Shown in pieces: positions 41,636-45,640 of a stretch of DNA of 64,000 nt. Position 1 is the first letter of the stretch. The number at the start of each line of letters is the position of its first letter. A program made the position numbers and the translations under genes. The notes below the pieces were generated by a model. That model did not search any database, was not told where the DNA came from, and was given only the letters and a program-made list of their open reading frames with translations. Source of the DNA: Epithemia pelagica (lineage: Eukaryota; Protista; Bacillariophyta); NCBI GenBank assembly GCA_946965045.2, contig OX337232.1, forward strand, positions 1,054,001 through 1,118,000, given 5' to 3'.

Positions 41636-44600
41636 ATGTCGAACAGCAAAGAGAAGGAGGATGAGGCAAGCAGCCCCTCGTCCTTGCCATCCTCTTCTTT
41701 GTCTCCGTGGATCAAGACGAGTGATTTGTTGGTGGACATTTTGATTGAAGAAGGTGTCCAATGGGTCTTTGGCATTCCGGGAGAAGAAAATTTGGATTTC
41801 ACCGAAAGTTTGCGGTTGCGTCAAGATTCGATTCAACTCGTCTTGACGCGTCACGAACAAGCCGCGGGATTCATGGCCGCCACCATTGGTCGGTTGACGG
41901 GGCAACCGGGTGTGGCCTTGTCCACCTTGGGACCGGGGGCAACCAATTTTACCACGAGTGCAGCCTTTGCGCAGCTGGGGGGCTTTCCCTCCGTCTTTGT
42001 GACGGGTCAAAAACCCATTAAAGATTCCAAACAGGCCAATTTTCAAATTATCAATGTGGTGGAAATGATGAAACCCATCACCAAATATTCCCATTCGGTG
42101 GCGTCGGGACACATGTTGGCCTCCACGGTCCGACGAGCCTTTTCGACGGCCGTGACGGAAAAGCCAGGACCTGTGCACTTTGAATTGGCCGAAGATGTGG
42201 CCAGTGAACGTACGAAACGATTAATTTTTGACAAACAGACACCGCGTCGTCCTATTGCCGAACCCAAGGCCATTGCAGCCGCCGTGTCTCTCTTGAAAGA
42301 AGCACAGCGTCCCATTGTCTTGATGGGTGCCGCCGCCAATCGACAACGGGCCATTCGAGCCTTGCGCAATTTTGTGCAAGAAACGGGCATGTATTGGGCC
42401 TGCACGCAAATGGGCAAGGGTGTTTTGGATGAACGTCACGAACAGTTTTTGGGATGTTGTGCCTTGAGTGACAAGGATTTTTGTCATGGAGCCATGGACT
42501 ACAGCGATGTTATTATCCTGATTGGTCATGATGAAAGCGAAAAGCCACCCCTCTTTATGCGGCCTGGACAACGTCGTAAGGTGATTCATTTGGCCTTTAC
42601 ACCGGCCACAGTCGACAATGTCTATTCTCCCACCCTTCAAGTCATTGGTGATGTCGCCAATGCTGTCTGGCAAATTCATCAACAACTAACTGAACAAGGA
42701 ATTTCCTGGAAGAACAAGCAACCAGTCTTTCAACGCTACAAGGAGCTGGCCGATGCCAAATTGCAACAAGGCTTGGACGACGATTCCTTTCCACTCAATA
42801 TTACTCGGGTTTGTGCCGATTTGCGTCGTGTCTTGCCGGAAGATGGTATTTTGTCCTTGGACAATGGTTTGTACAAGGTTATTTTGGCTCGCCTCTTTCA
42901 AGCCTATCAACCCAATACCGTGTTGCTGGACAATGCCTTGGCCACCATGGGCGCTGGAATTCCCAATGCCATTGCCTGTAAATTTCTCTATCCCGACCGC
43001 AAAGTGATTTCCATTAGTGGCGATGGCGGAGCCCAAATGAATTTGCCGGTATGTACTTTCTGTTTTATTGCTTGCGTGTAGACTCTTGCAGTGGATTTCG
43101 GGCTAACCTTTTGGTTCTTTTCACATTTTGGTGTCCTCATCGTTGTCTCCCTTTTCTCGGTTTACCTACTGCACTTTTTTTATTCTATTTCTGCTTTACA
43201 ACTCAGGAACTTGCCACCTGCATCCAATACAATCTCAATGTGGTTCATGTTATTCTAAACGACAATGCCTTTGGAATGATCAAATGGAAGCAGGCGGGAG
43301 CTGGTTTTGAAAATTGGGGACTGGATTTGCAAAATCCCGACTTGGTGGCCTTGGCTGAATCCTATGGATGCAAGGGATACCGTGTCACCAAAGCGGACGA
43401 ATTGGTCCCTCTCTTGACGCAGTGTTTGAACGAACCAGGAACCCATGTCGTGGAAGTTCCCTTTTCCTACCAATGGGTGTCGCAGCACTTGGAAACGATT
43501 CCAGCACAAGTCCAGGAATTGCATCAGATTATTGCCCAAGAATTTGGACTCTTGCATAAGGAAGACTGTTTTCATGGCAGTACCAGTACTGTTTCAGATA
43601 CCAAAGAGTCGGAAGATAAAGGCGACAAGCAGGCCATGGAGGCAGTGTCTGTGACGGCGCCGAAGGTCACAGCAACTCCCTCCATGACTAAACCTGACGT
43701 GCCAACAGCACCGGTACCACCAGCTTCGGTACCCGCCCCAGTCGCACCTCCAAAGCAGTCTCGTGTGGCGGGACAAGCCGATTATTCGGTTCAACCCGGC
43801 AGTACCCTTCCATTCTATCTCGCGGTACGTACTAAACCCAAAACCAAAATGACAGGAAACTTTGGCATTTCATCTAAACAAGCGCGACTGTTGTTGGTTT
43901 TGATGATGCACAGGGCCAACCAGTTACACCCAACGGCGATCTTCCAGTCGTAAACAAATATACGTTGCAAGAGTTTTGCAAAGTCGCATTGGCCGACGAA
44001 GGTCATGTCAATCAGGCCACGGAAATTGCTGCAACCGTAGGAGCCCACAAGATGCGTGCCTTGCCCGCCTATGTGCGACAACAAATTTTGCAAAATGTGG
44101 CCAATGAGGCGACCAAACGTCGGGATGAATTTGGATATTACTTGGCCATTGAAGCAGGAAAACCCATTCAGGATGCTCGTGGCGAAGCCGATCGGCTCAT
44201 TCAAACCTTTCAACTCGCTGCCGAAGAAGCGACGCGTATTTATGGAGAGTATGCTGATCTTGCCATTGCCCCTCGAGCCAAGGGATATACATCTGTGACG
44301 AAGCGAGTGCCCATTGGACCCGTCAGCTTGGTATGTTCGTTTCTTGGTCTTTCCTATGACGCTTATTGGTTTGACGTAGAATGAGTGTGGTCCTTCTCAC
44401 GACTTGCCTATGCTTGTTTTAGATTGCACCATTCAACTTCCCTCTCAACTTGGCGGCACACAAAGTTGCTCCAGCCATTGCTGCAGGTGAGTTCGATACA
44501 GCATGTCCGAATGGCTAGAGACGAACTCTTTTTCTCTCAATAACTCTTGTTTGTTTTGTTTGAAAAGGATGTCCATTTGTCCTCAAGCCAGCTTCCAACA

Positions 44601-45640
44601 CTCCTTTGGGTGCGCTCTTGATTGGCGAGATTTTGGCCAATGACCCAAACATGCCCAAGGAAGGCTTTTCCATCCTTCCCTGTTCTCGAACGGCGGGTAC
44701 ACTGCTCACCACGGACGATCGGTTCAAACTCATGAGCTTTACGGGCTCTCCGGGTGTGGGATATGCTCTCAAAGAGCAGGCGGGGAAAAAGCCCGTCGTT
44801 TTGGAATTGGGTGGAAACGCGGCCTGTATCATTGATGATTTGAATGTGGGACTGTCCCAAGTGGTGGAGGAAGTGGTCCATGGTGCCTTTTACCAATCGG
44901 GACAGAGTTGTATCAGTGTCCAACGATTGTTTGTCAATGAAAACATCTACGACGAGTTCCGGACGGCCCTGGTGGAAAAGGTCCAGAGTCTCAAGGCAGG
45001 GGATCCCATGGAGGAAGACACGTTTATTGGGCCATTGATTAGTGAAACGGATGCCATTCGCGTCCAAGAATGGGTCGAGGAGGCTGTCGCGGGTGGAGGT
45101 ACCTTATTGACGGGTGGACAACGGTTTGATCGAGTCTTTGTGTCACCGGCCGTGGTGGAACATGTCCCCCTTGATTGTAAACTCTACGTGGAAGAAGTCT
45201 TTGGTCCCGCCGTGACCCTTTCCAAATATTCCGATTCCGACTTTGCCGGTGTTGTCAATGAGGTGAACAATAGCAAGTTTGGATTGCAAGCGGGTGTGTA
45301 TACCAACAATTGGAATCGGGCTCATTATGCCTTTGATCACATTGAAGCTGGAGGTGTTTGCATCAACACGACACCGTCGGTCCGGATTGACTCCCAAGCG
45401 TGTACGTATACCTCTCTATCTATCAACATGTTGTTGTTGTTGTACCGTGTCCATTGAGGTCGCTGTTCAACGTCTCACTTTTTTCATGTATCTCTGCAAC
45501 TTGCTGCATACATATTTATTCTACAATTTGCAGATGGGGGAGTCAAGGATTCTGGATTGGGTCGAGAGGGCATCAAGTACGCGATTGAAGATTATACGGA
45601 ATTGCGAGTCATGGTCATGAAAGATGCTGGCAAGATATAA
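41636..45640 (+). CDS. Fusion: ThDP-dependent ALS-like 2-oxoacid decarboxylase plus ALDH21-like aldehyde dehydrogenase, 6 exons, 1150 aa
   Basis: FGIPGEENL, RHEQAAGFMA, GDGG..MN..ELAT...LNDN; P/A-rich linker; FTGSPGVG, LELGGN, GQSCISVQR, EEVFGP, YGGVKDSGLGREG. GT-AG introns 43049-43206, 43825-43913, 44331-44422, 44487-44567 and 45402-45533 all preserve frame (3453 nt in total). Confidence 0.85.

Follow-up and report, generated by a model that had tools for sequence, protein, structure and literature searches.

The 64,000-nt window analysed here, a whole stretch of Epithemia pelagica contig OX337232.1 (positions 1,054,001 to 1,118,000), carries a fused gene at 41636-45640 on the forward strand. 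The gene encodes one 1150-residue protein, in which a decarboxylase-type thiamine diphosphate (ThDP) enzyme is followed by an aldehyde dehydrogenase (ALDH) of the ALDH21 type. Four long open reading frame (ORF) pieces on this strand are linked by five introns into six exons, which together form a single frame of 3453 nt, equal to 1150 codons and a stop, with no internal stops. The introns are all bounded by GT..AG, measure 158, 89, 92, 81 and 132 nt, and have a G+C content of 0.38-0.42 compared to about 0.50 in the exons. An upstream in-frame TGA at 41630-41632, two codons ahead of the ATG, closes the frame. The features of the gene are listed below, with splice joints taken from contigs of the sequencing runs X5 and X1 and with some ALDH residues placed by alignment to the moss ALDH21 structure 5mz5.

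41636-43048, + strand: exon 1, residues 1-471
41714-42064, + strand: TPP_enzyme_N domain (exon 1, Pfam)
41855-41857, + strand: catalytic Glu74 (exon 1, residue mapping)
42272-42673, + strand: TPP_enzyme_M domain (exon 1, Pfam)
42860-43048, + strand: TPP_enzyme_C domain, first part (exon 1, Pfam)
42875-42877, + strand: Lys414 (exon 1, residue mapping)
43022-43024, + strand: Asp463 of the GDG motif (exon 1, residue mapping)
43049-43206, + strand: intron 1, 158 nt, GTATGT..CAG, joint in X5 (contig record 14, side 255 nt)
43207-43824, + strand: exon 2, residues 472-677
43207-43458, + strand: TPP_enzyme_C domain, remainder, with NDN at residues 489-491 (Pfam and NCBIfam)
43288-43290, + strand: Lys499 (exon 2)
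about 43549-43797, + strand: weakly conserved linker rich in Pro, Ala, Ser and Lys (exon 2, translation)
43825-43913, + strand: intron 2, the junction intron, 89 nt, GTACGT..CAG, joint in X5 (side 166 nt, same contig as intron 1)
43914-44330, + strand: exon 3, residues 678-816, N-terminal part of the ALDH (Pfam Aldedh 8-131)
44193-44195, + strand: Arg771, equal to Arg121 of moss ALDH21 (alignment to 5mz5)
44331-44422, + strand: intron 3, 92 nt, joint in X5
44423-44486, + strand: exon 4, 64 nt, IAPFNFPLNLAAHKVAPAIAAG
44487-44567, + strand: intron 4, 81 nt, phase 1, joint in X5
44568-45401, + strand: exon 5, residues 838-1116, ALDH core (Pfam Aldedh 155-432, E 2e-74)
44891-44893, + strand: Tyr946 (exon 5, alignment to 5mz5)
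44909-44911, + strand: nucleophile Cys952 (exon 5)
45383-45385, + strand: Arg1110 (exon 5)
45402-45533, + strand: intron 5, 132 nt, GTACGT..CAG, joints in X5 and X1 (record 2), absent in the relative L001
45534-45640, + strand: exon 6, ...YGGVKDSGLGREGIKYAIEDYTELRVMVMKDAGKI then stop (Pfam Aldedh 436-460)

Domain profiles are continuous over the splice sites. The Pfam model TPP_enzyme_C is matched at positions 1-62 by the end of exon 1 and at positions 64-151 by the start of exon 2, with intron 1 interrupting the ThDP-binding motif GDG...NDN. The C-terminal half covers positions 8-460 of the Aldedh model (PF00171) over exons 3, 5 and 6, in the segments listed above. Exon 2 ends with the first ALDH residues, GSTLPFYLA, and the junction between the halves reads ...STLPFYLA/GQPVTPNGDLPVVNKY. 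The N-terminal motif of the ALDH (PFYLA/GQPV...VVNKY) straddles the junction intron, which argues against two separate genes.

Transcript evidence comes mainly from runs X3 and X5, which stem from the same organism and the same study. The X3 contigs retain introns, as in a DNA-like run. The kind of library behind X5 is not on record and was taken as RNA because X3 of the same study keeps the introns. All five predicted introns are removed at the expected positions in X5 contigs. Contig record 14 (2133 nt) aligns to 41699-43047, 43206-43823 and 43913-44078, so that one spliced contig runs from the end of the ThDP enzyme through the linker into the beginning of the ALDH. The junction-spanning X5 contig, the only one among those listed, is spliced and in frame at a depth of 453. 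An oligo-dT marine metatranscriptome (X1) adds a 539-nt contig with zero mismatches and intron 5 removed. A relative with 82% identity in the N-terminal half (L001) has the identical fused order and, behind PFYLA, an intron in the matching position. Introns 3 and 5 are absent from L001, where ...PIGPVSLIAPFNFP... runs uninterrupted in place of intron 3, and those two exon joins are thereby confirmed. The original prediction had joined four ORF entries through five introns into one 1150-aa frame, with a junction at 43825-43913 giving PFYLA-GQPVTPNGDL, and this gene model is borne out by the frame and by the X5 joints. Its claim of a single transcript and a single polypeptide holds as well, to the extent that assembled contigs can tell, given the spliced junction in X5 and the intron-free fused ORFs found in other species.

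A second set of X3 contigs, at about half the depth, covers 44303-44410 and 45370-45598 with dense substitutions and small indels. The differences sit in introns 3 and 5 and the flanking exons. The variant is also expressed in X5, where the joint falls at 45399/45534 with TT in between. These contigs probably represent the second allele of a diploid.

The N-terminal half (N-half) belongs to the NCBIfam family NF006187 (PRK08322, "acetolactate synthase large subunit"), which includes the cyanobacterial 2-oxoglutarate decarboxylase OgdA. Exon 1 alone scores 573.3 bits (cut-off 509) and exon 2 adds 105.4. The next ThDP models stay below their cut-offs. A catabolic AlsS was rejected at 312 bits on NF006378 (cut-off 510) and 277 bits on TIGR02418 (cut-off 551), and a biosynthetic acetohydroxyacid synthase (AHAS) at 257.7 bits on TIGR00118 (cut-off 538), with 28% identity to E. 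coli IlvI. The N-half therefore does not group with biosynthetic AHAS. It carries PGEENL, the signature that had suggested a group shared with OgdA, and this grouping is upheld because OgdA orthologues fetched for comparison fall in NF006187 too, with 866-878 bits for the three that were scored. The catalytic residues E74, G462-D463-G464...N489-D490-N491 (GDG-X25-NDN, binding ThDP/Mg2+) and M438 are all present. They were read against the mutagenesis of MaKGD, the characterised Microcystis enzyme, with M438 as the Met that supports the V-conformation of ThDP, and docking into MaKGD places two lysines, K386 and K471, on 2-oxoglutarate (PMC10418658). The two lysines correspond to K414 and K499 of the window protein. 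They are absent from E. coli IlvI.

OgdA orthologues were retrieved by scanning a genome collection with NDGGYG.IEW, a motif taken from the MaKGD mutagenesis primers (PMC10418658) and back-translated. The matches were overwhelmingly cyanobacterial and yielded 92 complete genes of about 545 aa, which start with MNTAELLV.CLENEGV.Y.FGLPGEENL. A ThDP tree rooted on E. coli IlvI resolved two clades. Clade A has the OgdA motif and contains cyanobacteria, some proteobacteria and others; clade B contains the window gene, its eukaryotic relatives and many bacteria. Support for clade B is 100 in the Shimodaira-Hasegawa-like approximate likelihood ratio test (SH-aLRT), and the connecting branch has a length of 1.12. 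The catalytic Glu, GDG..NDN and both lysines are invariant in the two clades. The OgdA/KGD proteins SynPCC7002_A2770, sll1981 and MAE_06010 thus share with the N-half the family NF006187, PGEENL, ND..(Y/F)G.I.WKQ, the catalytic Glu and the lysines K386 and K471. The N-half nevertheless falls outside the cyanobacterial OgdA clade, in the sister clade B. Its identity to OgdA is 35-39%, compared to 50-60% to many bacterial proteins and 47-60% to fused eukaryotic proteins. An orthology with OgdA is hence not sustained. An origin by plastid or cyanobacterial gene transfer was rejected too, as clade B differs from the cyanobacterial clade. The nearest bacteria in clade B are a mixture of Myxococcota, Planctomycetota, Spirochaetes and Verrucomicrobia, so that we name no donor.

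The C-terminal half (C-half) has moss ALDH21 as its top solved relative (5mz5, 2e-94 over 277 residues), followed by 5j6b, 5jry and 5kf0 (aldehyde dehydrogenase entries of ~485 aa, E-86 to E-85) and then a gap to E-43. The nucleophile C952 and the general base E917, encoded in exon 5, are invariant in the aligned fused eukaryotic C-halves. In ALDH21, succinic semialdehyde is bound through its carboxylate by Arg121, Tyr296 and Arg457 (bioRxiv 10.64898/2026.01.13.699213). They align with R771, Y946 and R1110 of the window protein; chain 5mz5_A numbers them R139, Y314 and R475, an 18-residue offset that is the same at all three. The triad is invariant in 16 fused eukaryotic C-halves where the column is filled, the third column being a gap in one. 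The predicted likeness to ALDH21 is supported. The moss enzyme (Physcomitrium patens ALDH21A1; PDB 5MZ5, 5MZ8, 5N5S) shares the Cys, the Glu, the triad and LKPAS.TP with the C-half, and is a cytosolic NADP+-dependent succinic semialdehyde dehydrogenase. The exon 5 motif LKPASNTP, with Lys844 and Ser847, matches LKPASRTP of 5mz5, and Ser847 lies in the cofactor motif. NAD+-specific ALDHs usually have a Glu at the position of Ser847. The match fits a preference for NADP+, although it is only suggestive. In an ALDH tree without a moss ALDH21 row, the C-half groups with fused plant and algal proteins (support 99). Its best NCBIfam matches include lactaldehyde, sulfoacetaldehyde and phosphonoacetaldehyde dehydrogenases, all below cut-off. 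The cyanobacterial succinic semialdehyde dehydrogenase SsaD represents another ALDH subfamily, with 28-34% identity to the C-half, a separate clade and K/L/K instead of the Arg/Tyr/Arg triad. The dehydrogenase partner is thus not of the cyanobacterial SsaD type.

The fusion is widespread among eukaryotes. A HMMER search with exon 5 recovered P0122 (1019 aa), which combines TPP_M, TPP_C and Aldedh domains with the junction motif seen in the window protein. With P0122 as the query, full TPP_N/M/C and Aldedh proteins of 1075-1153 aa were found in public proteomes. ThDP enzyme and ALDH are fused in at least 25 eukaryotic entries. These include liverworts (two species of Riccia, Calypogeia), a fern (Ceratopteris), streptophyte algae (Spirogloea, Mesotaenium), green algae (Ostreobium, Bryopsis, two Coccomyxa, Elliptochloris), a red alga (Rhodosorus, shorter at 966 aa), and thraustochytrid relatives (Hondaea, transcript MMETSP0958). 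Environmental contigs, left unassigned, add further examples. The entries are named "hypothetical", "NADP-dependent GAPDH" or "probable lactaldehyde dehydrogenase at C-terminal half". Algal, plant and thraustochytrid fusions have the same domain order and junction motif P[FM]Y[LV]AG... as the window protein, but belong to other lineages and their linkers cannot be aligned with its linker. Likewise, the linker sequence differs among the window protein, L001 and P0122, all of which preserve PFYLA/PMYVA. The two halves give concordant trees, each with a eukaryote clade containing green-algal, streptophyte and stramenopile subclades, and with the window protein among diatoms. This agreement suggests that the fusion is old in eukaryotes, as it appears from both trees. 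The architecture is hence not new to this genome. No paper describing the fusion or naming a ThDP partner for ALDH21 came up in the library of papers searched; the fusion family is already in databases and undescribed in the literature as far as found.

The same pair of genes occurs in other arrangements. Seminavis robusta (L002) and three environmental diatom-type loci (L130, L131, L132) carry the orthologous ALDH and ThDP genes as separate, head-to-head neighbours with about 0.4-0.6 kb between them. On the simplest account, the fusion was retained in the window lineage and broken up into a head-to-head pair in some other diatoms; splitting and later re-fusion may be an alternative history. 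In Corallochytrium, the ThDP enzyme and the ALDH are consecutive gene models. A bacterial operon origin had been proposed as a check, and the two genes are indeed adjacent in bacteria: in Leptospira ognonensis and another bacterium the ALDH gene follows 6-11 bp after a clade B ThDP gene. The single-ORF fusions P0301-P0316 (about 1015-1048 aa), probably of bacterial source, join a clade B ThDP half to a Leptospira-type ALDH. They resemble the window protein in having a clade B ThDP enzyme followed by an ALDH with the Arg/Tyr/Arg triad. Their ALDH half, however, is of the Leptospira-neighbour type and only 36% identical to the window C-half, which points to a separate, independent fusion event. 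Moss ALDH21 stands alone, and its likely ThDP partner (P0357-P0360) is encoded by another gene. A clade B ThDP protein without a fused ALDH is present in Physcomitrium and Sphagnum, and no ALDH lies within 10 kb of the Physcomitrium gene. Positions 8567-8958 of L002, some 0.7 kb downstream from its intact ThDP gene, are a second and incomplete match to N-half residues 335-463 (45-56% identity), probably a fragment of a duplicated ThDP copy.

Partners are also exchanged between the clades. The cyanobacterial OgdA/SsaD system follows the same pairing logic as the window fusion, with a ThDP decarboxylase encoded beside an ALDH, but as separate polypeptides in the order ssaD-ogdA. An SsaD-type ALDH lies in the same fetched locus for 72 of the 92 OgdA genes, and directly beside ogdA where inspected. 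In L005, a clade B ThDP gene has an SsaD-type neighbour that is 50% identical to cyanobacterial SsaD and has NADP-dependent succinic semialdehyde dehydrogenase as its best NCBIfam match, below cut-off. Conversely, L064 (a Thermoguttaceae genome) has an OgdA-motif gene with a Leptospira-type ALDH. The two ThDP clades thus draw on a common pool of ALDH partners, of which SsaD and ALDH21 have both been assayed as succinic semialdehyde dehydrogenases. Such partner swapping is the strongest indirect argument, short of proof, that clade B also makes succinic semialdehyde.

We suggest, with moderate confidence, that the window gene encodes a cytosolic enzyme converting 2-oxoglutarate via succinic semialdehyde to succinate and yielding NAD(P)H. 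The data establish the gene model, the spliced contig across the fusion, the families of both halves, their intact catalytic residues and the broad conservation of the pairing, from which substrate, cofactor, location and any aldehyde channelling are inferred. A fused ALDH needs an aldehyde, and non-oxidative decarboxylation of a 2-oxoacid by the ThDP half would supply one. In a first step, the N-half, as an NF006187-type ThDP/Mg2+ enzyme, would decarboxylate a 2-oxoacid with a second acidic group, most likely 2-oxoglutarate, to give succinic semialdehyde. The ALDH21-type C-half would then oxidise the aldehyde to succinate and reduce NAD(P)+, with NADP+ being the cofactor of moss ALDH21. The halves would be tethered by a linker of about 80 residues, whose unconserved sequence rich in Pro, Ala, Ser and Lys fits a flexible tether, and channelling of the aldehyde between them is possible. 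The N-terminus (MSNSKEKEDEASS...) is short and acidic, and in L001 it has only eight residues ahead of the conserved core. Inspection by eye found no signal peptide or mitochondrial-type presequence, and a cytosolic location is therefore likely. Such a route would be independent of CoA and akin to the cyanobacterial OgdA/SsaD bypass. The fused 2-oxoglutarate-to-succinate bypass of the original prediction thus survives in part: family membership, the single fused polypeptide, the lack of a presequence and the adjacent bacterial genes are borne out; the N-half is no OgdA orthologue, its partner is not of the SsaD type and the architecture is found in many other proteomes.

Several observations weigh against 2-oxoglutarate as the substrate. 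With no more than 35-39% identity and a long branch in between, the N-half stands far from OgdA, and ThDP enzymes readily change substrate at such a distance. At five pocket positions the two clades consistently carry different residues (Q254->S, V382->N, H385->Y, L467->M, E469->K). NCBIfam calls the family of the N-half "acetolactate synthase", and we found no assayed clade B member in the literature. The contact residues of MaKGD come from docking into a model and not from a solved complex (PMC10418658). For the C-half, the Arg/Tyr/Arg triad is also present in related ALDHs without a known substrate, and the Km of moss ALDH21 for succinic semialdehyde is rather high (181 µM). Taken together, the high Km and the shared triad make another ω-carboxy or anionic aldehyde possible.

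The strongest competitor, which we still regard as unlikely, keeps the two-step chemistry and replaces 2-oxoglutarate with another 2-oxoacid bearing a distal anionic group. Candidates are 2-oxoadipate to glutarate, oxaloacetate to malonate, 3-sulfopyruvate to sulfoacetate and hydroxypyruvate to glycolate. That clade B is a deeply split sister group of OgdA and differs from it consistently in the pocket would fit such a substrate, as would the high Km of moss ALDH21 and the below-cut-off matches of the C-half to lactaldehyde, sulfoacetaldehyde and phosphonoacetaldehyde dehydrogenases. However, succinic semialdehyde is the preferred substrate of the moss orthologue of the ALDH partner, and knocking out this moss gene disturbs GABA (γ-aminobutyric acid), Glu and succinate: GABA and Glu accumulate in the aldh21A1 mutant and succinate is down by about 20%. 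The pairing of a clade B ThDP gene with a cyanobacterial-type SsaD in L005 and the retention of both proposed 2-oxoglutarate-binding lysines also favour 2-oxoglutarate.

A cytosolic pyruvate dehydrogenase bypass, in which pyruvate is converted via acetaldehyde to acetate with formation of NADPH, is improbable. Yeast PDC together with Ald6 is the model for such a bypass. A Perkinsus homologue is annotated as "pyruvate decarboxylase, putative", and the family is named after acetolactate synthases, which use pyruvate. These names are automatic, though, and the invariant Arg/Tyr/Arg that binds a carboxylate would be idle with acetaldehyde. Moreover, pyruvate is not a substrate of MaKGD, a characterised enzyme from the same NCBIfam family (PMC10418658).

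Two further explanations seem to us quite remote. The N-half could be a carboligase resembling acetolactate synthase, with the halves not acting in sequence and the fusion serving co-regulation or assembly only. The NCBIfam name and the solved N-half relative 13bb_A, labelled "acetolactate synthase" (5e-105), are in line with this. Yet the pairing of ThDP enzyme and ALDH recurs in three arrangements with two independent fusions, which argues for an aldehyde intermediate, and the characterised family members OgdA/KGD are decarboxylases. Equally far-fetched is a local three-gene pathway, in which an amino-acid dehydrogenase/FAD-oxidase fusion makes a 2-oxoacid, the fusion protein makes an acid and a SABATH enzyme methylates the acid. 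The neighbouring genes carry ELFV_dehydrog with DAO and Methyltransf_7 domains, and the order of reactions is coherent on paper. This neighbourhood is not kept in L001 (retroelement, SBDS, ORMDL, cofilin), L130 (Cu-oxidases) or Seminavis L002, though, and across kingdoms the ThDP-ALDH pair persists in the absence of these neighbours. Finally, a fusion that is not real, with two proteins made through the stop at 43951-43953 that retention of intron 2 would place in frame, can be dismissed almost entirely: the unrecorded library kind of X5 and the loss of rare variants from contigs leave room for a minor intron-2-retaining form, but the listed junction contig is spliced and in frame at its high depth, the ALDH motif PFYLA lies upstream of intron 2 in exon 2, and the same fusion is an intron-free ORF in transcripts and annotated proteins of many species.

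Returning to the conversion of 2-oxoglutarate to succinate, we tentatively propose, with somewhat less confidence than for the window gene, that the fusion family marks an unrecognised CoA-independent cytosolic route that yields NADPH and is common to diatoms, thraustochytrids, red, green and streptophyte algae, liverworts and ferns. If so, the route would be split into two genes in mosses and some diatoms, and a cyanobacterial-style bypass of the tricarboxylic acid cycle would be widespread in eukaryotes. The one-protein shortcut would skip 2-oxoglutarate dehydrogenase and succinyl-CoA synthetase and generate NADPH outside the mitochondrion. Published work assigns ALDH21 to the GABA shunt. 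Under this proposal, at least part of its aldehyde would come from a dedicated OgdA-like ThDP partner beyond the GABA shunt, and a stress-induced plant gene would gain a defined upstream partner. Models of carbon and nitrogen balance in diatoms and the design of succinate-producing strains could both be affected. The window gene itself is an expressed, ordinary member of the fusion family, and it is the family-level proposal that would change the reading of ALDH21.

Other features lie around the fused gene. The gene on the reverse strand at 36126-38731 combines ELFV_dehydrog (Glu/Leu/Phe/Val dehydrogenase) and DAO (FAD oxidoreductase) domains in a single 676-aa ORF, and another ORF is found upstream at 38216-38731. 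The fused gene is immediately preceded, at 39386-40495 on the forward strand, by a 369-aa ORF with a SABATH-type SAM-dependent carboxyl methyltransferase domain (Methyltransf_7, 7.5e-25); its adjacency to the fused gene is not kept in relatives. In L001, a Ty3/Gypsy-type retroelement ORF (RVT_1, RNase H, integrase) at positions 1-3719 precedes the fused gene by 2.3 kb, which breaks synteny with the window there. A long (CA)n/(TG)n microsatellite at about 41090-41270, about 370 bp ahead of the start codon, explains why the 41000-41499 bin is so strongly skewed in GC and AT. Downstream, at 46804-48654 and 49145-51817 on the forward strand, two near-identical ORFs have a C-terminal protein-kinase/APH-like domain, the second with a long N-terminal extension rich in His, Thr and Pro. 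The two ORFs look like a recent tandem duplication.

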